Assembly: GCA_047495785.1 (NCBI GenBank)
Contig: JBLDXI010000010.1
Location: 1,426,001 to 1,490,000 of the forward strand
Source: Lepidodermella squamata
Lineage: Eukaryota; Animalia; Gastrotricha
Direction of reading: 5' to 3'
DNA: 64,000 nucleotides
A program made the translations under genes and the position numbers. Shown in pieces: positions 4,514 to 59,944 of the stretch (the first letter of the stretch is position 1; every line of letters starts with the position of its first letter). Under the pieces are notes generated by a model, which searched no databases, was not told the origin of the DNA, and saw only the letters and a program-made list of their open reading frames with translations.

Positions 4514-7500
4514 CTACGAACTGGTTTCATCAAGGCCCTCCGGAACGTCCATTTCCCCATCGACGTGAAGGGTATGCCTTGAGGTCGTCGACATAGGCCT
4601 TGGTTCTTCCAAAGGGTTTGCGATAACGCCATCCAGTTTCGCATTATTCAAGTAACCAGCTGCTGCTAGTCGTTCCTCCTCTTTTGTCTTTTCAATATTT
4701 TGCAGGAACTCTTCAGCCGCAAAACGATTCCTGACCTTGGCTCGAAGTTGCTTTAGCTCACGAGTTCGACTCTTGTCGCGAAAATACTTCGTCATATGGG
4801 CCCAGTTATGCCGCAGTTTTTTCAGATCTCTCGATAGCGTGACATAATCCAAGCATACGATGATTCCGATGAAGAACGCCAAAATGCCTAGAACTGTTGT
4901 CGCAGTTGCAACTGCGGTAGAAGATTCGTAAGTTTTTGGCTTCGCAGCAGCTTTGGCACTGGAGAGGAGTTTATTCAAACTGCAGTAAAGGGGCTGCTTG
5001 TCCCAAGTTGAATTTTCATTGCATCTCCAATAGGCATAAATGCTGGACTGATTAGGGCTCGGCTCATATCCTTGGTTCCAATCGCATTCAAACGCTACAA
5101 TGTCGTTATAAAGAATTGTGTCGATTTCGGATGAAGCGTTCAATATGCGATACGAAGATATTTCGAAGTTTTGCGGCATTTCGCAGCTTACATCTAAAAG
5201 CAACAAATTATATAGGCTTAGCCTGAAATTACAGAGTTATTACACAGGCAGGATAGGGTGTTTGTTGACCAATAACCAGATTCCAAACACATATTGACCA
5301 CTTGATGTACGGGAGTGCCCTCAGTCCCGGGTTGTATGTATAAACTAGCAGCCCCAACCACGCATTGCATCGTGTAAGTATCACCGTAATAATAAATTCC
5401 ACTTTTTCTGTCGATAATTACAGCATTTTGTTCTTCCGTCGGACTTCGACACGTGACACCTGAATAAATAGTGCAATAGCTCGATGAAAGTAACAGATTT
5501 GCATTGAGTTTACTTGAGCACCGCGGTTGGTCGATAGGAGTCCATGTTCCGTTTGCTTGGCAAGTTTTTGTGAAGTAGCTGATGGAGACATCAGGCTTGT
5601 AGCCAGGGTTGCAGCTGTAGGATGCAACACCTCCAGTTTGATTCACGGAGACGTTGAAGTAAGTGTTTATCCCAATAACAAGCGATTTGCATGGCGGAAC
5701 TGTGAATTATACCGTTTTCATGTAGAAGGTATAGGGAGTTAATATCGTAACTTACGGCCGCACTGTGGGATTCCGTCCATCCAGCTCCATCCTGTTGGGG
5801 CTGAGAAAGTACACTTTGCTTTGCCAGTAGTCGAACCGGTCATATTGAAACCCGAATTACAACTGTACTGGACAATATCGCTTTTGTAAAAATTAGGGTC
5901 ACTCGTGAAGTTGACGAAGTAAGCGTTGTAGAGTTCAGGTGGGTTTGGGCAAGGCGTGGTGAGACATTTAGGCCTCTTCGCATTGATCATGAGCCAATTA
6001 CCTGAGGTGTCATTTTTTGTGAAAGGGTCGCAAACATGCATCGCAGTGTCTCCTGGTGCCTCAGCTATAAATCCTTTGTCACAAACCATGATTGCTGATT
6101 GCATGTACCCTGCCAAGCCATTGAACGAAGATAAGGGACGAGCTGCGAGAGACCAATTCGAGTTCGGTGCCAGAGAGATTCCTAGAGGGATGCCCGAGCA
6201 GTTGTTCGCTGGGTTCAGTCTCCTGCCACATGTGTACGGGCAGGTATCTCTTGTTTCAGAACTTTTTTCGCAAAAACCCTGTGCAGCCATATCGCCACAT
6301 GTGCAGTTTTGATCTGAAGACAGTTCCGAGTCGACATCGCACTCACAAGTCGCCCATTTCGTGCAGCTTGCTTGGCAAGATGGCCACATGAAGCCAGGAT
6401 TGGAAAGGCAACTGCCCTGATCTCTCCAGGTCTGGCAGATCGGACCAATGTCGGTTTTCGGCTTCAAACATAGCGTTCGAGATGTGTATGGTGTGCACAC
6501 GTCCGGGGAGGAGCAGTAAAATCCTGTTCTGCATGTCGGCGTACACAAATCTGTCAGAAAAAGTACGAAATCATCAGACTTCTATGATCCTAATGTCAAC
6601 CTTACATTCATCGCATATTTGACCAGTGCGCGTAGCGGTGCATTGGCATTTATCAGGCCCGATACAAGTACCACCATTTATACAATCAGGGTTGCAAATC
6701 GCTAAAAGAAGGATTTTTAAAAGGATTGCAAAGAATTGAGCCCATTTTCTCACGTGTTTGACATCGAGATCCGGTCCAACCCGCAGCACATTGACATGTC
6801 CAGTCAGTCAAACAAGTAGCTCCATTTTGACATTGTGGTGTACAGATAGCTGCACAAAAATTGCTAATTAAATTTCGCAGAAGAACACAAGTTTAATGCC
6901 TACCATTCTCACAGATAGATCCAGTTCGGTTCGATGGGCATTGACACGTATTCGGATTTATGCACGTTCCTCCATTTGTACAGTTAGGATTGCAAACAGC
7001 TGATAAAAGATGAAAAATTATGTGTCGAAATGTATTCTTCGCTGCATTTGACTACTCACGTGTTTGGCATTTGGGGCCACGCCATTGCGAGGTACATTGG
7101 CACGTCCAATCTGTCAAGCAAGTCCCTCCATTTTGGCATTGGGGTGTGCAAATAGCTATAAATTCGACAATTGTATACTACGCTAGGCATTCCAGAAATT
7201 ATCTCACCGTTTTCACAAATGGAGCCAGTACGATTTGATGGGCAGGTGCATTGATTCGGCGCAGTGCATATGCCGCCATTCGTGCAATCAGGATTGCAAA
7301 CAGCTAAAAGGTAATAATATGTTTTTCGTGCATGCATTTTTTGTGAATCTCATAGATTTACGGATATCGCATCTAGCTCCGCGCCATTGAGACGTACATC
7401 CACAAGTCCAGTTGGTCAAACACGTGGCCCCATTCAGGCAATTCGGTGTGCAAATTGCTAGTACATTTGGATTGATCACCGTATGCTGGTTAAAACGTTA

Positions 7501-10500
7501 TTCATACCATTTTCACAGGCAAGTCCTGTTCGGTTAGACGGGCAGGAACAATTGTTGGGAGCTATGCATGTTCCTCCATATACGCATGCCGGCGAACAAA
7601 CAGCTGTAGAAAGAGTAATTCATCATAATTCTATGAGTTGGTGAGCCATACGTGTTTGGCACTGCGCTCCAGACCAAGTACTCGGGCATTGGCAGGTTCT
7701 GTCGAGCTTGCACGTACCTCCATTTTGACACTCAGGCGTGCAAACAGCTATGATTAAATCGGATAAAATAATATAGAATTTTTATTGGCAATTTACGTAT
7801 CGAACAATCCTGGCCTGTCCAAAGAGAGGTGCAGGCGCAGTAATCTGCTCCCGCACAAGAGCCGCCGTTCTTGCAAGTGACCGTGGGACAGCCGACGTAA
7901 AACATGCGGCAGAAGTCTTTAACTTTCAGCAGCTCAGCAAGAGTTAGCTCCCGTGAAAATACAGAGACGCATGCGAAGTCGGAATTTCCTTGAGATTGAG
8001 CATTCACCGTCACCCTTTATTATTTTGGTATTTTTGGGATTCAGTTACTTCGAAACTGGGAAAATTCCTACCTTCTACCAATGGCGAGCCAATCAGACGT
8101 TGGTGGTTGGTTAGCGTACGTTACGTTAGCAATAAGAGAGTCGTTGCAATACATTCTAAAGATTTTCGTCGTTGCGTTGTAAGCGACCGCAACAAACTGC
8201 CAGCGGTTAAGTATCATGCATGAGTTGTTAGTGTACGAATTGGTCATAGAATTGAACCACAGCACGTTGCTCTGCTGCGCCATCCATAGATGCGTTAAAA
8301 CTGTTGTATTCGGAACAGAAAATTCTAATAATGGAGTTTGGGGGGCAAGATAACACTTCGCCCAAAGCGCAAGCGTGAACGAGTTGCCGGGATTAACCCT
8401 CGAATCGCGGATCGAAACGAATCGATCTGTGCCAGATGTAGCCGGCGCCAATCGAACGGCTGTGTATGCCCCTCCGAAAGGTCCGGATGCATAAATCGGG
8501 TCCCTGGAGAACTCGCCATCGATTGGATTAGTCGACTTGGCGTCGCTCGCACCGTAGTCAGCCGAAAGTGGCCAGTACGCAAGAAGGCCAGAAAACGAAT
8601 TCAAGGTGGCCGAGATAAAAGTAGTTAATACGACCTCTGAAACCATTCAAATTATGTTTCGCAAGTAGTAGGCTCAGGTCTTACTTGTGTCGCAAGTTGG
8701 TCCTGTCATACCAGGTGGGCAAGCGCACACGTCATTGCCAACACATGTACCTCCGTTGCAGGAAATGGAACATTTCACTTATTTCACAGAGAGAATGAAA
8801 TTAAAAGATTTAGGAGGTTTAAAATTTAGGTATGATTACCAGCAAATAAACGGCAAATACCCTTCAATTCTATGACTTCATCCATCGACAGAGCTTTCGC
8901 GTGAACTGACGCACATGCGAACCTCCCATCCCAGTTTATTTGCGTTGGATGGACATAGCTAATAATTCAGCAATGAGAACTATTTTGCAATTTACTGTAA
9001 ATAATCAAGAGCTAACCTGAATCCGAGGTACAAAGTTGATGACATTAACGGGGCTGAAGTGGCTGTGTAAGTCGTTGAGCTGAATGTATCGTCACAGTAG
9101 TATCTCTGAACCTTCGTATTGCTGTCATACGTAACAGCGACGAACACCCATTTATTCATGACAGTGCACGCAGCAGCCAGCCCACTTGGAGAAGCAGTGC
9201 TCAGAAGCAGCTGATTATTGGCACTGTGCCACAGATATGTGGCGTATGTCCCGCTGCTAGCCGCGGGATTGGATGAATGCAAATATTCGAAAATTGGCTC
9301 GGGGGCCGAAACAGCATAAATATAGGCAGCCAACGTCCAGGAATTTGCATTCAAATTCAAATTTGACGACTGGAATGTTACATAGCAATTAGGAGTGCCC
9401 AAACCAGCTTGGATAGATGTATCAGAGTATCCGAATGGCCCGACAGCATAGGTTAAAATGTTCGACGGAGATGCAGAGATCGTGTAAACCTTGGCGATGT
9501 CAGTAGCTTGAAAGTCCTCCGACAAAGGCCAGTAAGCAACAATTCCGGTCTGAGATTGTATTGTAGCTGCGATGTAAGTGTTGTTGATCGGCACTGTCAA
9601 TAGAATAATGAAGACGTGGTAATGATATTTCGAAAGGTCAACTCACGCGAATCACACAAAGATCCTGTCCAAGGGGATGGGCATTTACAGATTCCAGCCC
9701 CGACACATGTTCCACCATTCTGGCAGGTAAATCCACTGCACGTTACTGAGAAGAATCGACACCAGTTTTTGACTTGATTCATTTCAGCGGTGGTCAGGGC
9801 TTTTTGAAATATCGAAGCACAGGCAAATTTAGCATCAGCAGGTTGGGTGAAGGCCCGGTTACCCAGAAGGAATGAATCGCTTGAAGACGGCGAACTTGGG
9901 ACATTGACGATAACCCCTTGTGTAAGAAACTGATCGCCGCAAAACAGCTGCTGTGTTCTTGTCGCGTTGTCATAGACAATGCCAATGTACTGCCAGTTAT
10001 TGACCATCGCACAAGAGCCCATGGAACCCCCTGAGCCAGCTCCATTGAACCAGAGCATGTTCGCAGCATTGTACATCCAAAAGTGCATCATCGCAGTTCC
10101 AGATACGTGAAACTCAATTAACGGCATTGAACTTCCGCTGTTGACATTCACCCATACTCCGATGGTGAATGAATTTGAGCCCATTGATAGAGCGGCTGAA
10201 GTGAATGTTCCATAACGTGGCTGCGGCGTTCCAGTACCAGCTTCATATGAGGTACTGGCCACTCCGAAAGGGCCAGCCTGAAATTTGTGGACAGAAGTCG
10301 AAAGTACACCATTAATTCCAGCCAAGGTGGCATCTTTCAATTCATAGTCAACAGACAGCGGCCAATAAGCTATAAGTGACGGGAACAAGGCGAATTGAGA
10401 TCTCACGTAAGAAATATCGACCATTGCTATGACAATTGATACGTTTGATAAGTTTGATTAATTCAAGTCAAGATAAATTTACTTGATCTACACGCGTTTC

Positions 10501-12472
10501 CTGTATATGGCGGCGTACATTTGCAGATATTGTAGCCAATGCAAGTTCCGCCATTCAAACATCCCAGTGGGCAGTTTGCTGCGACGATAACAATATTATA
10601 AGTAAGCTCATACATGGGGACAGGGGATCTAGGGCCTAGATCTATCATCCCCATCCCTTATTGTATGGGATGAGGAATTAGCTTAGATGAAAACAAACAG
10701 TTCCACTCGGGAATTTACCTGAAAATAACTTGCAGGTATCGCGCACATCTATTAACTGAGCGGCCGTGAGAGCAGCAGAGTGAAAGGAAACACAAGCCAT
10801 TTTCACATCTGAGAACGACTCGCCGGCAGGGCTCCCAAAGAGCTTGGATGGGGCTCTGAAAACAATACATCTTAAAATTAGGAATAAGAATAGGTTATGA
10901 GTGTTATACCGATAACCTAGAGACAGCCAAGCACTCGTGGCGGGATAGTTTCCTAGTGTCTGCGTTGCTCCGAAATTCGATCCGCAAAATAAACGCAGCG
11001 TTTGAGATGTTGAAGTTTTTGTGTAAACATATGCGACGAATTGCCACTCTTGAGACAGCTGGCACGACTCAGTGTAACCTCCTGTATGAGGGTTCATCGG
11101 AGTGTAGTAAACTACGTCGGCTGAGTTTTGAAATGCGTGAAAGCCCATCGTAGTCGTGGGGTCAGTGAAATTGTTGAATGCGAAAAACGGCAGGAGTGCA
11201 ACAGTCACAAAATTGACGTAACCAGCCAAGGTCCAAGACGATGCGCCCATCGCTAGTTGGGTTGACATTATAGAGATCAATTTTCCCGAGTTGATATATG
11301 AAGCAGTGCCCGGTGTGAGAAAAGGTCCTATTGCGTAAACAGGAGTTGCCGGGGTCGAAACGCCATCGATTTTATTTGATGGTTTTGCGTCTCTCGCTGC
11401 GTAATTGCTTGTCAGAGGCCAGTAGCCGACAAGGTTTGGCATAGTTGCTAATCGGGCTTCAATGTAACTCGTATCGATTGAAGCTGAATAGGCTGAAATG
11501 AAGATGAGGAAAAGGTCCTTGGCTGTGGTTACCAAAAGTGCTTACTTTGGCTGCAAGTAGAGCCATAGTAAGGCGCCGGGCATTTACAGATATTATAGCC
11601 AGCACAAACTCCGCCATTTACGCAGGAAACACTCGGACATGAGGCTGATGGTAAGAGAAAATGTCAATTTGTTAATGCAGTAAAAACGGTGACAGCGATA
11701 GTATTTGAGGAATCAACTTACTGTAAAAGGCTCTGCACGCCTCCCTGACTTCGATCATCTCGTCTAAAGTGAGCGCACTTTTGTAGAACGAGCCACACGT
11801 TACTCTTCCTGTAGCTGTAGCTGTACTAGTAGTGCCCGGTGAATCTCTTCGGCCGTTGTAGATTTTATTAGTGAAAATCATCTGAGTCGCAGGGATTGGA
11901 ACCGCAGAGCCTGCTGAAAATGAGTCAAGGCAGAACAGTTTGATGGTGTTAGCATCTTTGTCGTAAACGATGCCGATAAAAACGTATTCAGCCATGTTGC
12001 AATACATGGTTACCCATTCGGAGCCGGTTCCGCCATTAACACCAATTATATGGGTTCCAGTTTGCATGTAGTAGAATCCGTAAGTCGCAGGCGCAGGTGG
12101 GTCGTCCCATTCCAAGAACGGCATGTTATACCGATCATCTGTATCTCGAAACTCAGTGTAAGTCCACGATGAACCGTCTCCGAAATTCAGCTGAGCACTA
12201 TTGATGACTAACCATGAACTGCTTGAAAATCCAAAACCAGCGTTATTTTGCTGAAATGCACCCTTTTGATTTGCTGTCAGTGATCCAGACGAGGCAGTGC
12301 TGGTGATTTTGTTGTGATTTTTGGCATCGTTGCCTAGGTAAGTACTGTCCCACGGCCAATAAGCTAAGCAGTAAGGCAGCGATGTTAGAGTAGCAAAGAC
12401 AACGTCAGTCTCAGCCGCTACAACGCTTGAGAAGACGAGCAACACAACGATCACTATTAACCTTCTTTCCAT
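4514..12472 (-). CDS. Paralog B, complete: SP-5x(LamG-like+EGF)-8xEGF-2xShKT-5xSushi-TM-cytoplasmic tail receptor, about 23 exons, about 2,200 aa
   Basis: ATG at 12472 (MERRLIVIVVLLVFSSVVA). Approximate exons 12472-11721, 11644-11546, 11492-10909, 10856-10719, 10578-10483, 10427-9647, 9593-9016, 8958-8840, 8777-8685, 8636-8072, 8014-7797, eight 96-nt EGF exons in 7747-6605, then 6550-5755 (ShKT motif CQTWRDQGSCLSNPGFMWPSCQASC plus Sushi), 5699-5514, 5459-5244, 5193-4514 (Sushi, TM VLGILAFFIGIIVCL, tail, stop). AATAAA on the minus strand near 4376-4381. Confidence 0.9.
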
Positions 12473-13440: not shown

Positions 13441-14079
13441 TCATACTCATACTCATACTCATTTTTATTTGCAAATCGTAATGAACAGTTAGCAAATGGT
13501 AAATTGATGATCAGCAGTATGAGTATGTGATTTCGAGGCGCCTCACCGCAGATGTTACATGTTTATCAAATAGAGCAGAATTATGTTTAATATAGTTGCA
13601 GAACGCTTGATGAGAATTATTTACGACAACAGAAGACAGACGGTTCCACGCAGCACGAACACGCCTAGAGAAGCAGAATTTATAGCTTAGGTTATTTCTA
13701 CACGCGCTCATCTTCACAGAGTGAGGAGGTAGGCGAGGATTCCGGCAGATTTCAAAGAAATCAGAGAAACCAATGTCAACTAATCCCTGATACATTTTAT
13801 GCATCAAAATCAAATCATGTTGGAGGCGGCGAACTTCAAGCGTCGTTAAGCCCAAATTTTTCAGACGATCTTCGTAAGAGGCACCTTCGACCGATTTGTG
13901 GTATGCGCTTCGATAAAGTAGGCGTTTCGTAAAACGTTTCTGTACCGACTCCAGGTCATCGATGTCGTGCAGGTTAAACGGCGAATACACGGCAGGGCAA
14001 AATTCCAGACGGGACAGCGTATATGTCTTATACGCTCTGAATCGGAGAGTTTTAGAAGAGAAAGACTTCCTTATCATAC
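13441..14079 (-). mobile_element. 5'-truncated non-LTR retrotransposon (CR1/L2-like LINE), C-terminal end of ORF2 with tandem-repeat tail
   Basis: ORF 14077-13511 carries motifs typical of the post-RT region of CR1/L2-type ORF2 (LEF..VYSP...LESVQKRFTK, YEDRLKNLGL..LE.RR..DLI..KM..G, FSRRV..WNRL). It is followed by AATAAA and a (GAGTAT)n tail at 13441-13461. TCATAC occurs at both ends (13441-13446, 14074-14079). Confidence 0.85.
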
Positions 14080-42200: not shown

Positions 42201-45200
42201 CTTGGAATTTTTTATCGAAATGAATCGACTAATGCCGGTAGCTGGCGCCAACGTTACGCTAGTAAAGGATCCGCCAAATGGACCAGAACTGTAAACCGGC
42301 TCACGGGAGAATTCGCCATGGACCTGATTAGTAGGACACGCATCTCTAGCTCCGTAATCGGCCGAAAGTGGCCAGTAAGCTACCATGGACGAATAAGAAG
42401 CCAAAGTGGCTGAAACGTAGCCCGTTACAATGACCTCTGAAAATTAGCCAACGTGAAAGCATTCGATTATTATTTTTCGATCTCACTTGTATCACAAACA
42501 GGGCCCGTCCAGCCAGCATTGCAAGAACAAACATTGTCGCCAGCACAAGCTCCGTTATTACAAGAAATTGTACACTTTCCTGTTGGAAGACAAGTAGGTA
42601 AAATCTTTCGAGATTAGGGATTCGACTTACTTGCGAATAGGCGGCAGATAGTTTTCAGTTCCATCATATCCTCCACACTCAAAACTTTCGAATGAACGGA
42701 AGCGCATGCGAATCTGCCAGTCCAGGTGATTTGAGAGGGATGCACAAAGCTGTATCCAAGGTAAAGAGTGGATGACGTGAGTGGAGGCGGAGAAGTCACA
42801 GTGTATGTCGTCGAGCTGAAAGCGTCGTCGCAGTAGTATCGTTGAATTTTCGTGGTTTTGTCATAGGTTATAGCCACGAAGGTCCATTGATTGAGAACCG
42901 TGCAAGCAGCTGGGATTCCACTAGGAGCTGCTGAGTAATAGTAAAGCTGATTTGTATTTCGGTGCCAAAGATACATCGCGTAAGTGGCACTCATCGCTGC
43001 TGGGTTAGACGAGTGAAGGTACTCGAATATGGGCTGAGGAGCGGCCACTGCATAGATATACGCGGTATAGGTCCATGAATTAGAACTTATATTCAGTCCC
43101 GGGGATTGAAAGGATACATAGCAACCAGGAGTGCCACTGCCGGTAGTTATCGCAGTATTCTCATAACCGAATGGACCAACGGAGTAAGTTAGCATGTTCG
43201 AGGGCATACCGGAAACCGAGTATACCTGGGCGACATCAGTTGCGCCAAAATCATAAGACAATGGCCAATAGGCGACAATCCCGGCCTGCGCTTGGATTTT
43301 GTTGAGGATATAAGTGTTATCCAAAGGCACTGAAAATTATAGAATTACTTTCACATAAATTAGAATTATAAATTGTTCTCACGAGTATCGCAGAGCAGAC
43401 CAGTCCAAGGAGATGGGCAATTACAAATTCCGATTCCCATACACGTTCCGCCATTATTGCAAGAAGTACTGCTGCAACTTGGTGTAAAATATCGGCACCA
43501 ATTTTTAACAGTATTCAGTTCTGTAGGCGTGAGCGCCTGGGTAAATATCGAGGCGCATGCAAAGCTACCACTGGCAACATTGGCCCCAGCAGATCTTGCC
43601 CCGAGGTAAAAGTTTTGCGCGGAAACGGGGGCGTAAGCGACTGAAAAGCCGCCAATGAATTGGTCACCGCAAAATAGATTCACCTTCAACGCTGTTTTAT
43701 CGAAAACCGCTGCAACGAACTGCCAATTAGTTACCATAGCACAACCAAGCGCGTAGCCGCCACCTGATCCCCCGGCATTGAACCACAGTGAATTAGCTGC
43801 TGGAAGTCCAGCAGTCGGAGGTATCCACTGCCAAAAATGCATATAAGTACTTGTTGCGTTGAAAAATTCTGCCAGTGGAACGGCATTCCCGTTGTCAAGG
43901 TTCAGCCACATGCTTATAGTGAAAGATGACGAGCCCATCGCAAGTTTCGGAGAACTGTATGTCGCAAAACGAGTTTGAGGCGAGCCTGCGCCCAGTTCAA
44001 CTGCTGTATTTTGGCCTCCAAATGGACCGTTCTCGAATTTGTGGATTGAATTGCTTGGTGTTCCGTCGATCTGATGCATCGTTATAGCCGTATTCGGACG
44101 TTAGGGGCCAGTAGGCAATCAAGCTTGGGAAACTCGCGAATTGAGTTCTCACAAAGGTTATATCGACCATTGCTATACAACTCCGTGGATAATAGGTTAT
44201 TTTCATTAAAATGATCGATCTTACGTGTTTTACAAGCGTTCCCAGTGAAAAGAGGTGGGCATTTGCATATGTTGTATCCAACACATGTGCCGCCATTCGA
44301 GCAACCCATAGGACAGTATACTTGAAACCAGGATGTTTTATGTTTTTATAGAAAACGAAGTAATTCATACCGGAGAATACCTTGCAGACATCTCGCACTT
44401 GTATCAGCTGACTCAATGAGAGAGCTGCCGCATGAAATGATATACAGGCCATTTTAACGTCGGAAGTTTTCTCGGGCTGCGCGGCACTGTTGTACAAAGC
44501 GGGATAGCTAATCGCAGGTAAAATCAACCATCAGCATATCAGCAAAAATTAACCCTCTTACCGGTAGCCCAGTGTCAAAGTCTCTGTGGTTACTGCATAA
44601 TTTGTCAGAGTTTTCGCTGCGCTAACAAAATTTGAACCACAAAAAAGCTGAATTGTGTTGGAAGTTCCTGTTTTCGTGAAGACGAGCGCGACGAATTGCC
44701 ACTGGCCTGTGTTAATGCAAGGCTCGGTGTACCCTCCTGTATGTGGGTTCATCGGAGTGTAATATATATTATTCCCACTAGGAGTATTGTGAGCATGCGT
44801 TCCGAAAGTATACGCCGGATCACCAGTCCAGTTAGTGAAGGCAAAAAATGGAAAGTCGCCGGCTGTTACAAAATTGATGTAACCAGCCCAGGTCCATGAC
44901 GCAGCTCCGAGAGACAACTGAGAGGATTGAATGAGTATCATCCTACCAGCGTTTATGTACGCTGCGGTATTCGGCATCAAAAACGGGCCATTCACGTATA
45001 CAGGTGTCGCGGGCGTTGAGACTCCGTCAATTTGATTCGATGTCTTAGCATCTCTTGCTGCGTAACTGCTTGTCAACGGCCAGTAAGCAATCAAACTAGG
45101 CAGATTGTTGATTTTTGAAGCGATATAAGCCGTATCAATCGGGGCTGTGTACGCTGTGGGCAAATACTTTCAATTAGCCAGATTAAGTATGATTAGTTGA

Positions 45201-57909: not shown

Positions 57910-59327
57910 ATTTTGTGGAAAATACGTTCTTCTTACAGCTGAATGTTATAGCGAGAAACTAATTATTTGACGTTGCCTCTCTAGGCAGTCCTCATTAATG
58001 ATTTGTATGCCTGCTTGAGCGTACGACGCAAAGGCAAAGGTTCGACTTGGTTTACTAGGTCTTTTCTCGCTTTTCATTGCTGCTGCGCATTTGAAAGGAA
58101 CTATTGTCTATTCACTATTCTATATTTAGCTACAAGAATTACGATCTATTCCAACAAAAAAACGTATGTGTCGGGGAAAGTCGGGCATCTCCTTTCTAAC
58201 ACTAAGCGACGATCACCTCGTGCGAAAGAAATATTCCGTCTCAGCAATCACATTTGCATTATTCATGCACAAGTCGGTCGATAAATATGAAAAGCTGCTT
58301 GTAAGATTAAAAACCAGACACTGTGCGCCTTTCGCATTAATTTTTAATCTAGCCCTTACGCGCGCACGCGTGGTTCGTAACAGTACTTGAAGAAAGCCGA
58401 GCTGTTGAAGTTGAATCATCAACTTGACAACGGTAACGGTCTTTAGTACCCGACATCATTATACAGACCAATGATGAAGACAACATCAGGAGGCTTTGAC
58501 AAACGGGCCTGGTTGGCCATTTCTGATTAATAGTCTCCAGTGAGTAAAAGCTCCGCTGATTACGTGAGACTGTGTTTCAGTTGGCTTCAGAGCGTGAACG
58601 TTTATTTAGAATTGATGAATGGGCAAATTCCGCTGATACCGACTTTGTACGCGTTTACTTTTTCAAAGGGCATTCCCTTAAAACTATTGCTCGTCTGCCC
58701 AAGATCGCTGCAAAGCAGGCTCAAATTCTCAGGAGAGGCCTAGCCTTGCTCTATAACTCGGTATTTACGGTAAATCAGTTTCCTCGTTCGATTTCTCTTA
58801 GGAAAAACCTAAGAACACCACCATGGAAGCCTGCGCTTAACCCCACTTTAACCTCTGGATCTTGACGTCGGCTTTGACCTCACGTCGAAATATGATTGGT
58901 TTAACACATTTTCCATGTTGCGGATATTTTACAGCAACATTTTAATGCATCTCTTGGTAATGAAAATTTACCGGATGTTTTTACCGAGGCCTGGAAAAGT
59001 CGAAATACAGAGGGCGAAACTTGGACAATAAAATGCCAATATCTTTCATTTTGAGTAAAAACATTGGCATAAGCTTGTTTTCTTCCCAAATAGGCAATTT
59101 TGCTTCTCTATTATACGATTTCTTCCGCTTCGGTATTCGGTATACAGTAGCTGCGCAATGAGTTTTAACCGAGCTGTATGCGACTTTTTAACCGACGAAA
59201 TTTAACCTAACCTATGATGAAATTAAGCAGAAGGAAGCAAAGACCACAAGCAACGAGCGCATTAGCGTGGCCGGAAACATGCGATCCACTTTGCATAAAA
59301 ATCCCTAAATTATATTGAAAAACAAAC

Positions 59328-59944
59328 CTGTATGCAATGTAAACTTTGTTAGTCGTGACAATTCGAGAGGCTGGGTACGGCATAACAGTTACAGGCGCGA
59401 AGGCGCCATTGCAGTACAGGCGGAGAGTGCCAGCATAAGCGTCGTAAACAATTGCGACAAGCCGAGGCGCGCCAATGTCACAAGCGTAGATCATCCATTC
59501 ACTGCCTGGTTGTCCATTTACGCCAATAATGTTACTGCCCGTTTGCCAGACGTAGAAACCGTTGACAGTTCCAACAGGTGGATCGTCGTATTCCATTATT
59601 GGCATGACAGCTCTGCTATTGGTGTCAATTACCTGGGCGTACGTCCATGACGTAGCTCCGAAGTTCAATTGTGCGTCTGTTATCGTGATGTAGCGGCCCC
59701 CCGCTGCGTTGTACGATCCGGAAGATTCACCGCTGTACCCGTTGTCATAACTACCCGACGCCGTGTTCGAAAGTACGCTATTCAACTTATTTGTCGTTTT
59801 CGCATCATTACCAGCGTATGAACTGCTCCACAGCCAATAAGCAACACAACTTTCGAGGGAAACCAACGCAGCGAACGCTAGATCAGCATCCCCATTGACT
59901 CGAGACAGAAGGCAAAACAGGGTTCCAAAAAGCAACAGCATCAT
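59328..59944 (-). other. Duplicate of paralog F exon 1 (signal peptide + LamG1): alternative first exon or orphan
   Basis: 617 nt, the same length and splice phase as 57909-57293. Open frame from ATG, GT donor at 59327-59326, nearly identical protein except a few changes including YWP to YWL. No exon 2 of its own. Confidence 0.8.

Follow-up and report, generated by a model that had tools for sequence, protein, structure and literature searches.

What kind of protein strings five lectin-like units, a long run of EGF modules, ShKT-like cysteine-rich modules and Sushi modules onto a single membrane span, and what might an animal need many of them for? The question is raised by gene B, which lies at 12472..4514 on the minus strand of a 64,000-nucleotide stretch of the Lepidodermella squamata genome (contig JBLDXI010000010.1, here C10; C10:1426001-1490000). 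This whole stretch is referred to below as the window. Gene B is an intron-bearing animal gene with short introns, and it is read as a chain of coding segments, all of them open. In order, they encode a signal peptide; five pairs, each made of a Laminin_G_3-type (LamG-type) unit of about 230 residues and a six-cysteine EGF module; eight further EGF modules that form a stalk; a small four-cysteine piece; and, after two ShKT-like and five Sushi-type modules, a single membrane span and a tail of about 108 residues. The initial annotation of this DNA had proposed the order LamG/EGF, EGF stalk, ShKT, Sushi and membrane span, and all of these parts are found on the minus strand at the coordinates listed below. 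We consider it probable that gene B is a functional member of a tandem family of about 36 genes and that its product is a large type I membrane glycoprotein, a lectin-like adhesion or recognition receptor with a selectin-like layout. We infer that such a protein would bind ligand, would be located at the cell surface, and would couple to the cell interior through its tail.

The features of gene B are as follows (searches were run exon by exon, without a joined spliced protein).

12410..12472, minus strand: start codon and hydrophobic signal peptide (about 21 residues), from the open reading frame (ORF) translation; paralog N termini are hydrophobic too
11723..12412, minus strand: LamG-type unit 1, the most divergent unit type; AYWP in alignment A1, hhalign 98.3-99.4% versus units 2-5, no Pfam match
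11553..11639, minus strand: EGF 1; six-Cys EGF pattern
10690..11535, minus strand: LamG-type unit 2, with a short intron inside read through in frame; weak Pfam Laminin_G_3 match (E 0.11), hhalign 99.4-99.7% versus units 3-5
10490..10573, minus strand: EGF 2; six-Cys pattern, Pfam EGF_2 E 0.0011
9762..10424, minus strand: LamG-type unit 3; Pfam Laminin_G_3 38.9 bits, structure model described below
9654..9740, minus strand: EGF 3, in one exon with unit 3; Pfam EGF_2 22.3 bits, six-Cys pattern
8829..9600, minus strand: LamG-type unit 4, exons 9600-9013 and 8966-8829; Pfam Laminin_G_3 30.2 bits
8692..8772, minus strand: EGF 4; six-Cys pattern
7912..8646, minus strand: LamG-type unit 5, exons 8646-8071 and 8013-7912; Pfam Laminin_G_3 37.9 bits
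7804..7890, minus strand: EGF 5; Pfam and six-Cys pattern
6604..7742, minus strand: stalk of 8 short non-calcium-type EGFs, two sequence types alternating; regular-expression map, weak Pfam matches of EGF, tenascin, teneurin and PEAR1 type
6345..6473, minus strand: ShKT-like module 1; six Cys, C..W...G.C and C..SC motifs, Pfam ShK matches in paralogs
6198..6344, minus strand: tentative ShKT-like module 2; pattern only
5964..6200, minus strand: Sushi-type module 1 (79 amino acids); four-Cys and Trp pattern, no Pfam match
5760..5951, minus strand: Sushi module 2; Pfam Sushi 28.8 bits
5518..5697, minus strand: Sushi module 3; Pfam Sushi 35.1 bits
5248..5457, minus strand: Sushi-type module 4, weak; Pfam Sushi 13.5 bits (E 0.098), four-Cys/Trp pattern
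4982..5185, minus strand: Sushi module 5, just below the cut-off; Pfam Sushi 18.9 bits (E 0.002)
4841..4921, minus strand: single membrane span, a hydrophobic run in the translation that ends in the CLDY(V/M)T motif found in every paralog
4514..4840, minus strand: cytoplasmic tail of about 108 residues from the translation, basic beside the membrane and acidic at its end, with the stop codon at 4516-4514

Head units and membrane-proximal base

Three of the five head units are recognized by Pfam Laminin_G_3 (PF13385; cut-off, 27.6 bits), namely, units 3, 5 and 4 with the scores given above. Unit 2 reaches only 13 bits, which is below the cut-off, and unit 1 has no match. The five unit types are mutually homologous when their profiles are compared by hhalign (probability, 98.3-99.9%). 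In an alignment of 15 LamG-type units from the window (A1), the AYWP motif is invariant, and S(F/W)T, WxF(V/I)AxxYD, a C-terminal AL...E helix and four cysteines are conserved. The jelly-roll motifs named in the initial annotation (LxAYWP, SWT/SFT, WxFVAxxYD and AL..xE) are thus conserved across the alignment, as are the further cysteines that it had pointed out. The proposed replacement of Y-x-(N/D)-G by a cysteine is likewise borne out, with the heads reading F-C-G-D where relatives such as P0036, a protein from the European Nucleotide Archive (ENA), read W-Y-N-G.

The AlphaFold2 (AF2) model of unit 3 together with its EGF module has a predicted local distance difference test (pLDDT) score of 87 and a predicted template modeling score of 0.85. 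The model is a two-sheet jelly roll, in agreement with the ConA-like fold that had been expected for a LamG unit, and a Foldseek search with it gave an E value of 1e-11. When it was compared with 48,161 Protein Data Bank (PDB) representatives by structural comparison (VIA), the best match was the arabinan-binding domain 4 of AbnA (5hon_B; Z 21.4, root mean square deviation of 2.7 Å over 191 residues). The HcN jelly rolls of clostridial neurotoxins and of their NTNH partners followed at Z 17-20. Sialic acid-binding CBM40 modules scored Z 15.5-17.5; pentraxins, with Z 14-16, scored lower than the Laminin_G_3-type sugar-binding domains. A total of 169 chains had a Z of ≥8, and the best 50 of these 169 were ConA-like jelly rolls of the lectin, glycosidase and toxin-binding types. 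The predicted fold of the head unit is ConA-like and, in this model, is closest to that of sugar-binding modules; the toxin matches of the model reflect the generic jelly roll only.

Membership in the pentraxin family was rejected, as no unit matched Pentaxin (PF00354) at an E of ≤0.1 and PTX3 was reached only at an E of 0.67 by profile. Of the proposed LamG-3/pentraxin-type identity of the heads, the Laminin_G_3 assignment and the ConA-like fold therefore stand, and the pentraxin assignment does not. No head unit matched Laminin_G_1 or Laminin_G_2 (LNS) in Pfam, no exon of gene B matched the C-type lectin family Lectin_C, and the Pfam matches of the gene B exons included no VWA, HYR or CUB domain.

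The two ShKT-like modules are the least secure part of the domain map. In both of them, six cysteines and the C..W...G.C and C..(S/T)C motifs are invariant in 19 paralogs, with module 1 carrying C..SC and module 2 carrying C..TC, and the spacing between the fifth and sixth cysteines is longer than usual. On gene B's own exon, Pfam ShK (PF01549; cut-off, 20.9 bits) gave no match even at an E of 10. In the genome-wide search, module 1 of two paralogs scored above the cut-off (25.0 and 23.6 bits) and that of gene E scored 15.1 bits; module 2 was never matched. The best feature-based atlas matches of module 1 were all ShK clusters (0.84-0.86), and these are to be read as leads only. In hhalign, module 2 aligned with module 1 in the expected register, at a P value of only 0.002. 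For the two modules together, the AF2 model was poor (pLDDT of 54 with 19 paralogs), which is too low for a fold search. A profile of the ShKT-Sushi exon (A2) found complement factor H and other complement regulators among PDB sequences at 2e-13; these matches were Sushi proteins only, with no ShK protein among them. The ShKT assignment is thus partly supported at the sequence level, being firm for module 1 only, through its paralogs, and resting for module 2 on pattern.

All five Sushi-type modules show the four-Cys/Trp pattern. Modules 2 and 3 exceed the Pfam Sushi cut-off (PF00084; 20.7 bits), module 5 falls just under it, module 4 matches weakly, and module 1 has no match, so that the five Sushi modules proposed initially are supported by Pfam for two, weakly or marginally for two more, and by pattern for the first. 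Of the Pfam domains that had been predicted for the protein, Laminin_G_3, EGF and Sushi were matched in gene B, and ShK and pentraxin were not. The last exon, which encodes Sushi module 5, the membrane span and the tail, shows 58-86% identity among paralogs. A repeat at the DNA level was looked for in the EGF stalk, and no such tandem repeat was found.

The tandem family

The window holds six to seven paralogs, all on the minus strand and with the same domain order. Across the assembly (121.2 Mb in 151 contigs), the ShKT-Sushi module occurs in about 36 copies, most of them between 0.75 and 1.52 Mb on C10, with four on C48 and single ones elsewhere. The family of about 36 genes has been found so far only in the Lepidodermella squamata genome. 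The number of EGF modules in the stalk varies, with 8 in genes B, C and D, 2-3 in gene E and about 11 in gene F. Outside the window, one paralog (C10:1274300-1284299) has seven LamG-EGF units and one stalk EGF, followed by the ShKT pair and Sushi modules; another keeps the order with five heads and two stalk EGFs, and a third has about 13 stalk EGFs. Genome-wide, the heads therefore range from 5 to 7 and the stalk EGFs from 1 to about 13. The initial annotation held that the order was the same in every complete copy. This is the case in window genes C, D, E and F, but the count of five heads does not extend to the whole genome, since one paralog has seven. In six paralogs, a further carbohydrate-binding module, matched by Pfam AbfB, directly precedes the ShKT pair.

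When the LamG-type units are placed in a tree, they cluster by position (1 to 5), with bootstrap values of 91-98% for the groups of positions 1, 2, 4 and 5 and of only 53% for that of position 3. This clustering by position implies that the array of five units already existed before the genes were duplicated. Divergence among the copies spans a wide range, with synonymous divergence (dS) from 0.17 to >2, and the pairwise ratio of nonsynonymous to synonymous divergence (dN/dS) is 0.05-0.20 in every domain with unsaturated dS, which indicates that the genes are maintained by purifying selection.

Between the subfamilies represented by genes B and F, identity is 35-44% in the heads, 61% in the ShKT-Sushi exon and 58% in the last exon. 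Because these identities are lower in the heads, the heads are the variable part of the protein and the base is the constant part. Among genes B to E, the nearest relative differs by segment. Between genes B and C, identity is 89-95% over heads 1-4 and only 76% in the last exon. Between genes B and D, it is 56-71% over heads 1-4, 86% in head 5 and 96% in the ShKT-Sushi exon. Genes D and E share 85-94% identity in heads 2-4 and 56% in head 1. The heads of gene B are thus nearest to those of gene C and its base to that of gene D, and heads 2-4 of gene D are nearest to those of gene E. This identity mosaic points to gene conversion or unequal crossing-over between neighbors.

Several other observations concern the array and its surroundings. 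Unit 3 of gene E (window positions 44020-44130) has 11 bases fewer than gene D just after the AYWPLTSEYGY motif, a deletion that puts the sequence out of frame, so that a stop codon is reached 39 codons from that motif. Gene E may have been disabled recently, or the deletion may be an assembly error. At window positions 59207-59944, between genes F and G, there is an orphan first exon that encodes a signal peptide and LamG unit 1. It is nearest to unit 1 of gene F, reads AYWL instead of the invariant AYWP, and has no downstream units, and it is therefore probably a partial duplicate. A 188-residue ORF between genes B and C (window positions 13511-14077) has no Pfam match but resembles the C-terminal part of a non-LTR retrotransposon ORF2.

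Related modules also occur outside the family. Pfam AbfB has dozens of matches at C66:139000-241000 and C4:2537000-2604000. Among them, about 19 nearly identical matches follow one another at intervals of about 1,010 bases at C66:167863-186396, a spacing that suggests a tandem array of its own, made up of exons or genes with AbfB modules. Weaker Laminin_G_3 matches fall in open frames of 747-973 codons at C7:3007613-3084834, C32:4237581, C13:2042561, C54:3097853 and C38:776546, and these belong to a different set of LamG-bearing genes.

Proposed function and rival explanations

If gene B does encode an adhesion or recognition receptor, its five ConA-like Laminin_G_3 modules, with a small EGF module bracing each of them, would form a multivalent ligand-binding arm whose ligand would most likely be a glycan. 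The rigid EGF stalk would hold this arm away from the cell at a distance specific to each paralog. The better-conserved base, which is common to all paralogs, runs from the ShKT pair through the five Sushi modules and the membrane span to the tail, and this base would link heads of every type to one common partner or anchor. Four observations weigh against this proposal. The botulinum toxin HcN jelly rolls score as high against the head model as the sugar-binding domains do, and a common fold does not show the function of the head units. No family match and no recognizable motif was found for the tail by Pfam or by atlas features. Pairwise dN/dS gives no sign of positive selection at the level of whole domains. 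The frame-breaking 11-base deletion in gene E means that not all copies in the array need be working.

A broader idea, which we regard as possible but unlikely, is that the roughly 36 genes form a phylum-restricted, recombination-shuffled repertoire of surface receptors, in which variable heads would recognize microbial, food or nonself glycans and the constant ShKT-Sushi-tail base would signal. If this were true, a diversified system of lectin receptors would have arisen independently in a phylum for which there is no molecular description of immunity or sensing. Its narrower form, a diversified innate-immune or nonself repertoire in which the variable heads see microbial or foreign glycans, recombination makes new combinations and the constant base signals, strikes us as quite improbable. 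The large, tandemly arrayed family, the mosaic identity between paralogs and the stronger divergence of the heads than of the base speak for such a repertoire, but the head dN/dS of 0.05-0.2 reveals no excess of amino acid change and the tail contains no known immune signaling motif. It is rather doubtful, too, that the proteins are structural anchors that hold epidermal cells to the cuticle, scales or matrix through nonsignaling adhesion, with the stalks as spacers. The alternation of LamG and EGF modules resembles that of the matrix and junction proteins neurexin, CASPR, Crumbs and EYS, as is generally known, the EGFs are of the rigid tenascin and teneurin types, and purifying selection acts throughout. 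However, about 36 divergent paralogs with head-specific divergence seem more than a pure anchor needs, and the conserved tail suggests an intracellular partner.

Two further explanations have very little to recommend them. It is hardly credible that the ShKT modules are channel-blocking, toxin-like units and the protein a precursor of secreted ShK-type peptides. The cysteine pattern is of the ShK type and Pfam ShK matches occur in paralogs, but the modules lie between the EGF stalk and the Sushi modules of a predicted membrane-anchored protein and are the most conserved part of the family. The only dibasic site in their exon is a conserved RR in the CGRRL of module 2, 10 residues before the end of the pair, with no KK, KR or RK (the flanks were not searched). 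ShKT domains are, moreover, common nontoxic modules of animal extracellular proteins. An assembly or amplification artifact, or an array of dead pseudogenes, is just as hard to entertain. The likely source assembly was made from amplified DNA with chimeric reads (PMC11660948), and the deletion in gene E and the orphan first exon at 59207-59944 would fit such an origin. Against this, the copies differ by a dS of 0.17 to >2 with dN/dS well under 1, and the order is kept in divergent subfamilies on two contigs. All coding segments of gene B are open, and this explanation was rejected on the basis of open frames and of dN/dS. Gastrotrich cell surface biology is almost undescribed, and these roughly 36 very large genes, whose heads are of a sugar-binding type and whose base is conserved, are candidates for roles in sticking, sensing and defense.

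Relatives and comparison with known systems

A profile of the LamG unit was run against 1.84 billion representative proteins and found 5,809 with an E of ≤0.001. None of them scored like a self-match, which indicates that the Lepidodermella squamata genome is outside this library. In the local search of the 155 best LamG relatives among these 5,809, the ShKT-Sushi module and the tail were absent from every one. Word-based searches with the ShKT-Sushi exon, the last exon and the LamG3-EGF exon, which cover only proteins similar in length to the query, were all blank. A scan of Joint Genome Institute (JGI) metagenomes with the ShKT profile found nothing; with the LamG profile, it found four weak loci, and the two that were examined (L015 and L017) are long uninterrupted ORFs of bacterial type. 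The literature yielded no protein with this domain combination. The absence of relatives is weak evidence, because the databases evidently lack the genome and probably the phylum and because no full-length architecture search was made.

The nearest named relatives of the heads are uncharacterized multi-Laminin_G_3 proteins of Lingula anatina (XP_013421969 and XP_013404145) and amphioxus (XP_078610005). In ENA metagenomes, the single-exon ORFs P0009, P0031 and P0035 encode a signal peptide, a LamG unit with the same four cysteines and an EGF-like module, with P0009 showing 32% identity over 269 residues. They probably come from related small animals. The domain order of gene B appears to be undescribed at the level of these exon-by-exon searches, in databases that probably lack the phylum. 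To this extent, the novelty claimed for it in the initial annotation holds, with no protein of the same layout in the sequence, metagenome or literature searches.

The three ENA ORFs are only first-exon-sized pieces, in contrast to the complete gene B. The Lingula and amphioxus proteins resemble gene B in having 3-7 tandem Laminin_G_3 units, a WPL strand, the SFT motif and a cysteine pair in the last strand and helix. However, their identity is only 21-24%, their units are not each followed by an EGF module, and they lack ShKT, the tail of the family and the two extra cysteines of the gene B heads (F-C-G-D and S-C-A-M). Their partner domains are PAN or a set of Sushi, VWA and C-type lectin.

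Repeated LamG-EGF cassettes in a large extracellular region are also a feature of alpha-neurexin, CASPR, Crumbs and EYS, of which neurexin, CASPR and Crumbs are type I membrane proteins. These proteins use Laminin_G_1/2 (LNS) and have no Sushi or ShKT, whereas gene B matches Laminin_G_3 only, and no sequence relationship to gene B was found beyond the superfamily. SVEP1/polydom and the Sushi proteins of the CSMD/Sez6 type resemble gene B in that EGF and Sushi modules occur together with a ConA-like module, of pentraxin or another type. Module number and order are quite different in gene B, which has no VWA, HYR or CUB match.

A parallel in layout is found in the selectins, in which a C-type lectin is followed by EGF, Sushi, a membrane span and a short tail. 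Gene B is like them in its lectin-like head, EGF, membrane-proximal Sushi modules, single span and short tail. In contrast to selectins, its heads are ConA-like Laminin_G_3 modules and not C-type lectins, they number five and not one, its EGF stalk is long, and it contains two ShKT-like modules. What is shared is the principle of heads on a stalk, and the resemblance is one of layout only. Within the family, head number, stalk length, the optional AbfB module and swaps between tandem copies show how stock modules give rise to new receptor layouts. The layout of gene B is thus a new combination within the well-known design of lectin heads on an EGF/Sushi stalk and not a new kind of system.

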